Made by a program: the position numbers and the translations under genes. Positions 1,591-4,242 of a DNA stretch of 6,017 nucleotides are shown here, piece by piece. Source of the stretch: Octopus sinensis (Eukaryota). The notes under the pieces are model-generated. The model did no database searches. It was not told the origin of the DNA and saw nothing but the letters and a program-made list of their open reading frames with translations. The stretch covers positions 1-6,017 of the forward strand of contig NW_021829460.1 in the NCBI RefSeq assembly GCF_006345805.1, given 5' to 3'. How positions within the stretch are numbered: the stretch's first letter is position 1; each line of letters opens with the position of its first letter.

Positions 1591-1855
1591 GGGTGCGTGG
1601 GTGAATATATACAAACACACACATATACAGGAATATATATAAGGGTATTATTGCTTACAATGATATCAAGTTGCAAGCATGCATAAATGTATATATATGT
1701 GTATATATGCTTTCACTGCATACGTGTTTGTTAAAAATAGTATTGATATTTACTTTTCTGTAAATAGTTATAATAGTATTTTATAAGCTTAAAGCGATCA
1801 CCGCGCAATGACTACGGAAAATAGTCTAATAATGGGGCTTATAAGCCCTCGGCAG

Positions 1856-1860
1856 AAAAA
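1856..1860 (-). terminator. Putative Pol III terminator (T5)
   Basis: TTTTT on the minus strand, 12 nt downstream of the tRNA-like 3' end. The same GCTACATTTTTCTG context is seen at 3821-3834. Confidence 0.45.
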
Positions 1861-1872
1861 TGTAGCTTTTCC

Positions 1873-1945
1873 CGTACGCGTGGGACTCGAACCTACATAC
1901 CTTTGTTTACGCGACTAAGTGTGTTAGCTATTATACCAGCGAACT
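1873..1945 (-). pseudogene. tRNA-like pseudogene, anticodon CGT (Thr-like)
   Basis: AGTTCGC TG GTAT AATAGCTA ACAC AC TTAGT CGCGTAA ACAAA GGTAT GTAGG TTCGAGT CCCAC GCGTACG (73 nt). Perfect B box GGTTCGAGTCC (1883-1893). Acceptor stem 5/7, anticodon stem 4/5, T stem 4/5. G replaces the invariant U33 and the D-loop GG is lost. Confidence 0.75.
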
Positions 1946-2071
1946 AACCTGCTTTTTCTTATCAGATTTTAAGAACTATATTAGTTCGTAGTTGTTTTTG
2001 TAAACAAACTTTCATGTGCTTTCATTATGAATGGCTTTGTTAAGCAATGCAGAGTTTTACAATTCTGTAAG

Positions 2072-2244
2072 TAATAATAATATAATATAATAATAATAAT
2101 AATAATAATAATAATAATAATAATAATAATAATGATAATAATAATGATGATAATAATAATAATGATAATGATAATAATAATAATGATAATGATAATAATA
2201 ATAGTAATAATAATATTAATAATAATAATAATAATAATAATAAT
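2072..2244. repeat. (TAA)n microsatellite with TGA/TAG variants
   Basis: Read directly, about 170 bp. It begins at the TAA-rich motif native to the repeat unit boundary. Confidence 0.97.
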
Positions 2245-2247
2245 ATT

Positions 2248-2502
2248 TGCCCATATCCTACGCAAAATACTCTCTATGTAATCCCAAGGTTTAAAACAAA
2301 CTTTTTTTTAATTTATTTATTTTATTTTATTTTATTTTATTTATTTATTTATTTATTTATTATGTATTAGACATTCACTAGTACAACACCAAAAAAAAAC
2401 ACCCAAATATATGGCACAGAACTTCCAACCTGTTGTCTCTTGAGGTCTCTGGGTGAGACTTGGAGCCAACTTGTACAGACATAAAGCAAAAGTCAAACAT
2501 AG
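2248..2502 (+). mobile_element. 5'-truncated 3' end of an R4/Dong-clade-like (RLE) non-LTR retrotransposon
   Basis: 2249-2281 reads GCC CAT ATC CTA CGC AAA ATA CTC TCT ATG TAA = AHILRKILSM*, resembling the C-terminal (LGT)AxILR(K/R)xL motif of R4/Dong/Rex6 ORFs. It is followed by a ~220-bp 3' UTR (with a (TTTA)n expansion and GAGGTCTCTGGGTGAGACTTGG) and flanked by (TAA)n on both sides. Dong elements are known to target TAA repeats. Only 10 codons support the clade call. Confidence 0.65.
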
Positions 2503-2660
2503 AATAATAATAATAATAATAATAATAATCATAATAATAATAATAATAATGATATAAAATAATAATAATATAATAATAATAATAATAATAATAATAATAA
2601 TAATATTAATATAATAAGAATAATAATAATAATAATAATAATAATAATAATAATAATAAT
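2503..2660. repeat. (AAT)n microsatellite / retroelement tail
   Basis: Read directly, about 158 bp with a few interruptions. Confidence 0.97.
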
Positions 2661-3136
2661 ACATTGTTTTGTCTTGGTATAAAAGATGGGCTACAGCAAA
2701 TATTCTGCTCAATACCACGATTTGTTTGTCAGTTGTTTGACCTTAACCAGTTGAGCATGTCCTTTAGTGGCTGACGATATGTGATCTCTGATCACGAGCA
2801 GAAGTAGTGGGGGAGCATCATAGCCATGTGTTGAGAGGGATTCTTGGGGTTGAATAGTTCACCTTTGGAAACATGGGTGGTTCTTTCAACATCCTTAACA
2901 ACCTTATTCAGGGACCGTTTGAGCGGGATGTGCCTACTCAACCTGAAGAAAATTCTAACTGGCCCCACCTGCAAGGTCATGTGCTGTTTTCTTGATATGA
3001 GATCACCATGTCGCGCACATATGGTTGTGATGCATGTGCCTGGTGTACCTTTATCAGACGGGTAGTCATGATAGGATATGGGCTTCGTATATTTTACCCC
3101 AGTGTCACTTTGATGGCATGAACTGCTCTCTCACTC
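2660..3136 (+). mobile_element. Non-coding interspersed repeat, copy 1 (5'-truncated relative to copy 2)
   Basis: Aligns to 3316-3773 at roughly 88-90% by eye (offset 656). Both copies end in CTGCTCTCTCACTC followed by an AAT-type tail. This copy lacks the ~68 bp present at the 5' end of copy 2. Orientation is inferred from the shared 3' end and variable 5' end. Confidence 0.8.
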
Positions 3137-3247
3137 AATAATAATAATAATAATAATAATAATAATAATAATAATAATAATAATAATAATAATAGTAATA
3201 ATAATAATAATAATAATAATAATAATAATAATAATAATAATAATGAT
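3137..3247. repeat. (AAT)n microsatellite / retroelement tail
   Basis: Read directly, about 110 bp, nearly pure. Confidence 0.97.
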
Positions 3248-3775
3248 TCCCTGATGCAGTACTAGGTAGTGGCTCTCATGGCTTCTGATCTTATCTGATT
3301 GGAAGTTTTATCATGTACATTGTTTTGTCTTGGTATAAAAGATGGGCTACAGCAAATATTCTGCTAAATACCACAGATTTGCTTGTCAGTTGTTTGACCT
3401 TAACCAGTTGAGCATGTCCCTTAGTGGCTGACGATATGTGCAACTCTGATCACGAACAGAAGTAGTGGAGGAGCATCATAGCCCTTTGTTGAAAGGAATT
3501 GTTGGAGTTTTGGATAATTCACCTTTGGAAACATGGGTGTTTGTCCAACATCCTTAAACAATCCTTATTCAAGGACCTTTTGAGCGGGATGGGCTACTCG
3601 ACTAGAAGAAAATTCTAACAGGGTCCCACATGCAAGATCATGTGATGTTTATCTTGATATGAGATCACCATGTCGCGCACATATGGTTGTGATGCATGTG
3701 CCATGATGGTTATACTGGGCTTCGCATATTTTACCCCAGTGTCACTTTGATGGCATGCACTGCTCTCTCACTCAA
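3248..3775 (+). mobile_element. Non-coding interspersed repeat, copy 2 (longer 5' end, 27-bp internal deletion)
   Basis: Starts TCCCTGATGCAGTACTAGG directly after (AAT)n. It lacks copy-1 bases 3040-3066 at junction 3701/3702 and ends CTCTCACTCAA plus a short degenerate AAT tail (3776-3800). Confidence 0.8.
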
Positions 3776-3816
3776 GAATGATAATAATAAAAATAATGAT
3801 ATTATTTCATAAGATT

Positions 3817-4242
3817 AAAAGCTACATTTTTCTGTGGAAGGCATATATGCTCCATTATTAGACTGTTTTTCTTAGTCATTGTGTGGCGATTGCTATAAGC
3901 TTTAAGCTTATAAAATACTATTGTTATTATTAACAGATTGTAAAACCCGATACTGCTTAACAAAACCATTCGCAGCGAAAGCACATGAAAGTTTGTTTAC
4001 AAAAACAACTACGAACTAATACAGTTCTTAAATCTGATAGGAAAAAGAAGGTTAATTCATTGGTGTAATCGATAACACCTTAGTCGCGTAAACAAAGGTA
4101 TGTGAGTTCGATTCCCTCGCGTAAGGAAGAAACTACTTATTTCTGTCGAGGGCTTTTATGACCCATTATTAGACGATTTTCCTTAATCATTGCACAGGGA
4201 CCGCTTTAAGCTTGTAAACTACTATTATTATTATTTACAGAA
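3817..4242 (+). repeat. tRNA-containing ~305-bp tandem repeat, right tract (3' part of one unit plus one full unit)
   Basis: 3817-3937 is a direct repeat of about 4128-4241 (TTTAAGCTT at 3901 and 4205; ACAGA at 3933 and 4237; period 304). The full unit 3938-4241 is the inverted homologue of 1757-2063. Confidence 0.85.
4054..4125 (+). pseudogene. tRNA-like pseudogene, anticodon CGT (Thr-like)
   Basis: AATTCAT TG GTGT AATCGATA ACAC C TTAGT CGCGTAA ACAAA GGTAT GTGAG TTCGATT CCCTC GCGTAAG is exactly 72 nt with canonical spacing. D stem 4/4, anticodon CGT at 4087-4089, B box AGTTCGATTCC (4105-4115). Acceptor stem is decayed and position 33 is G. Confidence 0.7.

Follow-up and report, generated by a model that had tools for sequence, protein, structure and literature searches.

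A 305-bp octopus repeat with an internal tRNA-Thr-derived module in two inverted partial tandems, and its possible relation to Penelope-like integration

Introduction

Tandem units with an internal RNA polymerase III promoter are known from satellite 1 (OAX) of Xenopus and from the transfer RNA (tRNA) gene arrays of Entamoeba and zebrafish, where they form long arrays. Here we describe a unit of about 305 bp with a tRNA-like core in Octopus sinensis, found in a stretch of 6,017 nucleotides (contig NW_021829460.1 of assembly GCF_006345805.1, positions 1 to 6,017 of the forward strand) which is 33% G+C and rich in microsatellites, and which is called the window throughout. An earlier reading of the sequence, referred to below as the original prediction, had taken this unit to be a candidate tRNA-derived satellite or a decayed tRNA array. 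We tentatively favour another reading, drawn from the geometry at this one locus, in which the unit is possibly a short non-autonomous retroelement that integrated as partial tandems, as Penelope-like elements do.

Several RNA-mediated systems come close to such a unit. The first is that of the TRIMs (miniature retrotransposons with terminal repeats) which carry a tRNA-like sequence within the long terminal repeat (LTR), as in Helenus (TRIMp3), whose LTRs are 120-323 bp long and whose animal members make 4-bp target duplications; seven bivalve Helenus families are tRNA-Thr-like, tandem arrays are known for LTR-11_DR, and the same source contains no cephalopod report (PMC10886601). The second is that of the partial tandems of Penelope-like and retrozyme type (PMC8557442, PMC8969392, PMC7761336). 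The hallmarks of Penelope-like insertions are 5' truncation, partial tandems that form pseudo-LTRs, an inverted 5'-truncated copy at the 5' side, and an extension of 30-40 bp at one end; the Naiads among them show an insertion bias for (TA)n and lack hammerheads, and non-autonomous derivatives insert as several copies head-to-tail (PMC8557442, PMC8969392). In Octopus vulgaris, Penelope-like elements are both abundant and varied (PMC13282606). Animal non-LTR retrozymes are known in a mollusc (PMC7761336; bioRxiv 10.64898/2026.07.22.740005), and the schistosome repeat Sm-alpha was first described as 'satellite DNA' (cited in PMC7761336).

Layout of the repeat tracts

The pieces of the unit were delimited by local alignment and by a search with a unit profile (nhmmer), and the microsatellites by Tandem Repeats Finder. 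The pieces and the sequences adjoining them are the following:

1683-1709: TA/TG-rich microsatellite, adjoining the left tract at its outer (3') end
1756 to 1709, minus strand: 5' head (48 nt) of one more unit, immediately 3' of UA
2063 to 1757, minus strand: UA, full unit of 307 nt (nhmmer E = 3e-107)
2071 to 2064, minus strand: 8-nt tail stub TTACAGAA of an upstream 5'-truncated unit, directly preceding UA (read from the sequence)
2072-2245: (TAA)n, which is (TTA)n on the sense strand of the unit, 174 bp (period 3, 58.7 copies)
2246-3816, plus strand: spacer between the tracts, comprising (TTTA)n, an (AAT)n-tailed fragment and an element X in two copies
3817-3937, plus strand: UB, the 3' 121 nt of a 5'-truncated unit, corresponding to unit positions 191-304 (nhmmer E = 1.6e-31)
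3938-4241, plus strand: UC, full unit of 304 nt (nhmmer E = 1.6e-106)
4242-4328: (AT)n-rich microsatellite, adjoining the right tract at its outer (3') end

The results showed that the two complete units which the original prediction had noted are indeed present as UA and UC, and that they are 85.5% identical over their full length (260 matches, 44 mismatches and 3 gap columns). In UA the order is 5' flank, tRNA-like core, run of five T (T5), hairpin, and a 3' flank with a TTA-rich tail which ends in ...TTTACAGA. The head-to-tail boundary between UB and UC lies where it had been placed and reads ...AACAGA/TTGTAAAAC. Upstream of each full unit lies the 3' end of another copy, with CA-GA(A)T-TG as the common junction (3937/3938 and 2063/2064), the stub at 2064-2071 being joined to UA through GAAT as well. 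The further head downstream of UA is weak when taken alone (21/29 identical at unit positions 20-48, nhmmer E = 1.6), and its phase agrees within 3 nt. Thus the head-to-tail joins of the single repeat that had been proposed for 1707-4242 do exist, but they belong to two tracts on opposite strands and not to one array.

The two tracts, each of 1.2-1.4 units, lie head to head with their 5' sides facing and their 3' ends outward, so that they pair as inverted repeats, and the distance between them is 1.75 kb. About 790 of the 2536 bases within 1707-4242 are derived from the unit, and the remainder consists of (TAA)n/(AAT)n and unrelated repeats. Tandem Repeats Finder reported no array with a period of ~305 bp in the window, since both tracts are shorter than two units. 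The end of the right tract coincides exactly with ...TTTACAGA(A), the point at which the (AT)n begins (4241/4242), and because of this exact end the unit boundary is set independently of the tandem junction. At the inner side of the left tract, the (TTA)n upstream of the stub continues the TTA-rich tail of the unit. A self-comparison of the window pairs the outer microsatellites (1683-1709 and 4242-4328) as one repeat family, and between the outer flanks of the tracts there is no homology above background, their score of 33 being that of unrelated AT-rich DNA.

The unit profile gave no match within the spacer 2246-3816, which holds other repeats, all on the plus strand: a fragment at 2362-2502 with an (AAT)n-type tail at 2503-2661, and two copies of element X (~500 bp), the first at 2660-3137 with an (AAT)n-type tail at 3137-3244, the second at 3316-3778, possibly from 3245, with an (AAT)n-type tail at 3779-3816. 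The two copies of X are ~86% identical with gaps counted, and the elements of the spacer look like the outcome of serial retroposition into one AAT/TAA microsatellite.

The tRNA-like core

The original prediction had placed a tRNA-derived module followed by a T-run at the centre of the unit, and this part of it was borne out, the module lying at unit positions ~117-192. The features of the core are as follows:

1871-1946, minus strand: tRNA-Thr(CGU)-derived pseudo-tRNA of UA (ARAGORN with relaxed thresholds: tRNA-Thr(CGT))
4053-4127, plus strand: pseudo-tRNA of UC, more decayed (partial match to the Rfam tRNA model)
1856-1860, minus strand: T5 run of UA, terminator-like, 10-12 nt 3' of the tRNA-like end (read from the sequence)
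1835-1848, minus strand: perfect 14-nt palindrome GGGCTTATAAGCCC of UA, just 3' of the T-run (sequence and alignment)

The Rfam tRNA model matched UA over its full length with 21.3 bits (1872-1945, minus strand) and UC with 14.7 bits at 4061-4118 (plus strand), in the latter case over model positions 8-63 only, and both cores fall under the Rfam gathering score of 29. The E-values printed by Rfam are multiplied by 4227 families, and for the tRNA family alone, named beforehand, the value for UA is ~2e-4 per window; because the E-values are small for a single family named in advance, the tRNA ancestry is real. ARAGORN found 0 tRNA genes with its default settings and no tRNA in UC even at relaxed thresholds. 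The minimum-energy folds of the cores are not cloverleaves and are no more stable than those of shuffled sequences (z = +1.14 for UA and -0.22 for UC). The B box GGTTCGAGTCC is perfect in UA (1883-1893, minus strand), UC has a B-box-like AGTTCGATTCC that is one base off (4105-4115, plus strand), and the A box is degenerate, with ~6/9 of its specified positions matching at best (by eye). Of the 72-73-nt cloverleaf with A and B boxes that had been proposed, what holds is thus the tRNA derivation and the B box of UA, and what does not hold is the cloverleaf fold, together with an intact A box.

The defects of the core are common to the two full copies. The anticodon loop is CGCGUAA in both, with G at position 33, an A.A mismatch in the anticodon stem is found in UA as well as in UC, and acceptor pair 4-69 is U.U in each. 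Since UA and UC carry the same tRNA-killing defects, the ancestor that was amplified was already a pseudo-tRNA, and the shared G33 and A.A mismatch therefore mean that the module was not under tRNA selection.

The T-runs lie at the places noted before, as T5 at 1856-1860 in UA and at 3827-3831 in UB, and as a run decayed to TTATTT at 4137-4142 in UC. The palindrome that follows in UA has a counterpart GCATATATGC in UB at 3845-3854 and is decayed in UC at ~4150-4164; in UB one of its pairs is altered on both sides (T-A to A-T), which with three sequences says little. A 9-nt complement of the 5' flank, ACGAACTAA, with the tRNA-like head is present in UA only and lost in UC, and was treated as chance. 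With its B box, weak A box and T-run, the tRNA-derived module was probably a former RNA polymerase III promoter and terminator and not a tRNA gene.

Divergence among the copies

The comparison of UA with UC by segment gave identities of 88.6% for the 5' flank, 84.2% for the tRNA-like core and 83.3% for the 3' flank, which demonstrates that the core is not better conserved than its flanks, and judging from these figures we see no selection on the core since the copies arose. In the 3' region common to the three larger copies the identities are 85% for UA and UB, 83% for UA and UC, and 78% for UB and UC, so that the tandem neighbours UB and UC are no closer to each other than are UA and UB on opposite strands. 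Such star-like pairwise identities fit copies that would have been made together and have then decayed neutrally. On the scale given for O. vulgaris, where a Jukes-Cantor distance of 0.09 corresponds to ~25 million years (PMC13282606), the 8-11% divergence per copy would place the event some tens of millions of years ago.

The longest identical run between UA and UC is 44 nt, GAAAGCACATGAAAGTTTGTTTACAAAAACAACTACGAACTAAT, located at 1975-2018 (minus strand) and 3982-4025 (plus strand) in the 5' flank, outside the tRNA-like core. A run of this length is only mildly unexpected at 15% divergence (~0.2 per unit).

Unit ends and comparison with described elements

Within its boundary the unit reads TGTAAA...TTTACA, that is, it has TG...CA ends which form a perfect 6-bp terminal inverted repeat; TG...CA inverted ends within 4 nt of the fixed ends were obtained in 0.9% of shuffles (P ~0.009). 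Between units there are 3-4 bp, GAAT or GAT. GAAT-like tetranucleotides flank each full unit, and the same bases double as the tandem junction. No primer-binding site of TGG type occurs anywhere in the unit, and the sole polypurine run, AGGAAAAAGAAGG at 4040-4052, is internal to it and immediately precedes the tRNA-like head.

The octopus tracts differ from Xenopus OAX and from tandem tRNA arrays in that they comprise at most 1.4 units and descend from an ancestor that was already a pseudo-tRNA. The tRNA-derived short interspersed elements (SINEs) OK, OR1 and OR2 of octopus, in the citation of Ohshima and Okada (1994) given by PMC4758252, share with the unit the host group and a tRNA-derived polymerase III module. 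The difference is that a SINE starts at the tRNA head, which in such elements lies no more than ~15 nt from the 5' end, whereas the unit has 115 conserved bases before the head and a T5 directly after the tRNA-like part. With the ~115 nt upstream of the head being part of the repeat, as the 88.6% identity of this flank confirms in agreement with the original prediction, an ordinary tRNA-SINE was ruled out. Helenus LTRs are alike in the tRNA-like module, the B box, the following T-run and the TG...CA ends, and are distinguished by belonging to elements with an internal domain that carries a primer-binding site and a polypurine tract; their sequence similarity to the octopus unit is confined to the B box (PMC10886601).

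The schistosome repeats Sm-alpha and Sj-alpha (PMC2770079) combine, in ~330 bp, a tRNA-like sequence with a tandem, satellite-like organisation as the unit does, but Sm-alpha has an active hammerhead and is tRNA-Gln-like, whereas the octopus unit is tRNA-Thr-like and without a hammerhead, and no sequence similarity between them is claimed. The animal non-LTR retrozymes (PMC7761336; bioRxiv 10.64898/2026.07.22.740005) resemble the unit in their tandem non-coding units of ~150-300 bp with <50% G+C and in having no LTR, primer-binding site or polypurine tract; they differ from it in that the octopus unit has neither a hammerhead ribozyme nor an unusually stable self-paired fold. Penelope-like insertions and their non-autonomous derivatives (PMC8557442, PMC8969392) are alike in the tandem of a 5'-truncated with a full copy, the orientation of the inverted copy on the 5' side, the extension at one end, the AT-rich microsatellite at the ends and, as far as the Naiads are concerned, the lack of a hammerhead. 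The octopus unit differs from them in being only 305 bp long and non-coding, in having a tRNA-derived module, and in the 1.75 kb that separates its inverted halves. The unit stands near SINEs, Helenus, Sm-alpha and the retrozymes, and Penelope-like pseudo-LTRs, and has the defining feature of none of them.

A number of other classes were tried and set aside. A retrozyme or Sm-alpha type with a hammerhead was ruled out, there being no hammerhead and no strongly self-paired unit RNA: Rfam gave no hammerhead match in the window at E up to 10, and the window contains no CUGANGA...GAAA core. A rod-like RNA was rejected on the folds of the unit RNA (z = -1.55 and -0.36). A complete Helenus TRIM was ruled out by the lack of an internal domain, primer-binding site or polypurine tract between units, a miniature inverted-repeat transposable element or other DNA transposon by having the 6-bp terminal inverted repeat only, with no fitting target duplication (by eye), and a Helitron by the lack of TC...CTRR ends. 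A SINE in circular permutation, with the tRNA head at one end and the purine run at 4040-4052 at the other, was rejected as it needs two 3'-truncated copies, and a simple inversion of one array was rejected as re-inverting joins unit position 48 to 191.

Possible integration as partial tandems

According to the reading that we tentatively favour, the 305-bp unit would be the decayed footprint of a short, non-coding, non-autonomous octopus retroelement with an internal tRNA-Thr(CGU)-derived module consisting of a B box, a weak A box and a T-run. We infer an RNA-mediated origin, a single event and a Penelope-like partner: one old composite insertion into an AT-rich microsatellite, of the kind made by the machinery of Penelope-like elements, may have left a partial tandem on each side, in which a full copy follows a 5'-truncated one head-to-tail, these tandems lying head to head with their 3' ends outward and with a short 3' extension on one side. 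A later expansion of (TAA)n, together with three (AAT)n-tailed retroposons, would then have pushed the two halves 1.75 kb apart.

The evidence for this lies in the arrangement of the copies. A full copy in tandem with a 5'-truncated copy is seen twice (UB with UC, and the stub with UA), the orientation of the inverted copy on the 5' side matches the Penelope-like layout, with 1.75 kb of other repeats intervening, an AT-rich microsatellite is found at both outer ends, and the 48-nt extension is present at the left tract only. By analogy, the arrangement of truncated and full copies, head-to-head tracts, one-sided extension and microsatellite ends corresponds to the published Penelope-like signature.

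Several points weigh against this reading. To our knowledge there is no Penelope-dependent element with only a tRNA-like module, and with the unit seen at a single genomic locus its mobility is putative. There are only four tract ends, so that the geometric fit could be a coincidence, and with AT-rich low complexity making up ~23% of the window, two such ends are expected by chance with a probability of ~0.05. The gap of 1.75 kb between the inverted halves requires later insertions, and the copies of X, being ~86% identical, are not clearly younger than the copies of the unit. By the Rfam and core-motif scans the unit is without a hammerhead, unlike canonical Penelope-like pseudo-LTRs and animal retrozymes. 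In addition, polymerase III would be stopped by the T5 that directly follows the tRNA-like part, before it had copied the full unit, and the TGTAAA...TTTACA ends point to an LTR rather than to a Penelope-like element.

Alternative explanations

The unit could also be the monomer of a DNA-amplified tandem family, either a satellite or a short dispersed satellite-like array, with a tRNA-derived polymerase III module in each monomer and the two tracts as eroded remnants or orphons, which we regard as doubtful. Three head-to-tail junctions with one sequence and an upstream flank that belongs to the unit speak for it, the O. vulgaris genome contains 3.1% satellites in 80 families and 15% unclassified repeat (PMC13282606 supplement), and PMC7492417 describes short satellite-like arrays dispersed in euchromatin as common in molluscs. 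However, the tracts have 1.2-1.4 units with no Tandem Repeats Finder array, and there is no homogenisation, the neighbours being 78% identical in comparison to 85% for opposite-strand copies; the exact end at the unit boundary and the two 5'-truncated predecessors are also more orderly than random erosion of an array. In the usual sense of the term, which implies long homogenised arrays, the window holds no satellite, its tracts being short, the copies 15-22% diverged (78-85% identical) and the neighbours not homogenised. The original prediction had derived amplification at the DNA level solely from the upstream flank, and the two published RNA-mediated routes cited above also place the module inside the unit. 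It is still less probable that the two copies are what is left of an array of once-functional tRNA-Thr(CGU) genes with native flanks and terminators, and we consider this highly improbable. The tRNA-Thr-like core, the perfect B box and the T5 10-12 nt downstream are as in real tRNA genes, but G33, the A.A in the anticodon stem and the acceptor-stem mismatch recur in both copies, which leads back to a common ancestor that was already defective, conservation of the tRNA part does not exceed that of the spacers, and both copies score under the Rfam gathering score. A functional or recently functional tRNA array was ruled out on the shared defects and the lack of extra conservation.

The TG...CA ends also bear on a Helenus-like (TRIMp3) solo LTR, a 301-bp TGTAAA...TTTACA element duplicated in tandem through the 4-bp target-site duplication GAAT, which seems to us quite unlikely. 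Its perfect 6-bp terminal inverted repeat falls at an independently fixed boundary (P ~0.009), the tRNA-like module in mid-unit followed by a T-run is as in published Helenus LTRs (PMC10886601), and GA(A)T is found on both sides of each full unit. The difficulties are that there is no internal region, only 3-4 bp lying between units, that the unit lacks a TGG-type primer-binding site and has its only polypurine run (4040-4052) inside, just 5' of the tRNA-like head, that the published Helenus sequences have only the generic B box, and no other k-mer, in common with the unit, that the reports from molluscs are limited to pteriomorph bivalves (PMC10886601), and that partial tandems in inverted orientation are left unexplained. 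Equally improbable in our view is a rearrangement specific to this locus, in which a unique segment with a tRNA-Thr pseudogene was duplicated in tandem and inverted here without there being any family. The lack of a further copy in 20 kb of O. vulgaris, in metagenome, viral and prokaryote contigs, in the protein collection and in paper texts agrees with it, but these searches barely sample octopus DNA and their negative outcome means little. Such a rearrangement would, moreover, need at least four duplication events reusing one junction, and an inverted segmental duplication including the flanks is unsupported, the flank score of 33 being background.

Search for further copies

Exact-pattern scans with two conserved 22-23-mers of the unit found no copy in the metagenome, viral and prokaryote genome contigs, and in the protein collection no copy was found either by alignment of a junction-spanning open reading frame (ORF) or with joined six-frame stop-free segments of both units. 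Those ORFs encoded in the window that were looked up directly proved to have no record. In 20 kb of O. vulgaris chromosome OX597819.1 there was no copy of the unit, the sole nhmmer match having a background-level E of 0.05. Unit 16-19-mers were absent from the paper texts, from the Helenus sequence supplement and from the supplement of the O. vulgaris repeat paper. No description of the unit was found in the literature searched or in the Helenus sequence set, Dfam, Repbase and the octopus repeat libraries being outside this scope; the unit may sit among the 1102 'unknown' or the 80 'satellite' families of O. vulgaris (PMC13282606 supplement).

It is unlikely, on present evidence, that the unit stands for a new group, which would consist either of cephalopod short retroelements that combine a tRNA-derived polymerase III module with partial-tandem, inverted integration of Penelope-like or retrozyme type and no hammerhead, or of a branch of Helenus/TRIMp3 in cephalopods with tandem LTRs as its form of spread. 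If true, either version would be a hybrid, between SINE and retrozyme or between SINE and TRIM, that is undescribed for the phylum. If the family is mobile, it would represent a third way for a tRNA-like polymerase III module to be carried inside a repeated unit, besides SINEs and Helenus TRIMs, and would link tRNA-derived 'satellites' like Sm-alpha to hammerhead-less Penelope-like machinery. Units of this kind swell the counts of tRNA pseudogenes and can easily be mistaken for satellites, LTRs or SINEs in classification. Should the locus be no more than a local duplication, or a minor satellite in decay, there would be nothing unusual about it.

Other repeats in the window

A tRNA-derived SINE of 203 bp is located at 813-1015 (minus strand), with a perfect 22-bp target-site duplication TGGCTGTGAAGCAAAATTCTTA at 791-812 and 1016-1037. 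An ORF across it has matches among the proteins predicted for Octopus vulgaris (E = 1.9e-14) and for O. bimaculoides, and a copy with 80% identity is present in the 20-kb O. vulgaris locus of the matching protein (OX597819.1) at locus positions 10143-10373. This SINE is nested in another dispersed repeat at 489-1060, of which the O. vulgaris locus has three copies with 72-75% identity (1396-1481, 5748-5898 and 11253-11619). These matches by themselves mark the DNA as that of an octopus or a near relative.

Rfam microRNA matches (mir-297, mir-3688, mir-4716 and others, with 40-47 bits, well under the gathering scores) at 1540-1629, 4323-4391, 5432-5515 and other positions all coincide with microsatellites of the types (TG)n, (TA)n and (CT)n(TA)n(GA)n, and were dismissed as low-complexity artefacts. 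Farther to the right, after a (TATC)n of 42 copies at 5123-5292, comes a (CT)n-(TA)n-(AG)n block at 5380-5546, which forms a large imperfect palindrome with 4493-4575.

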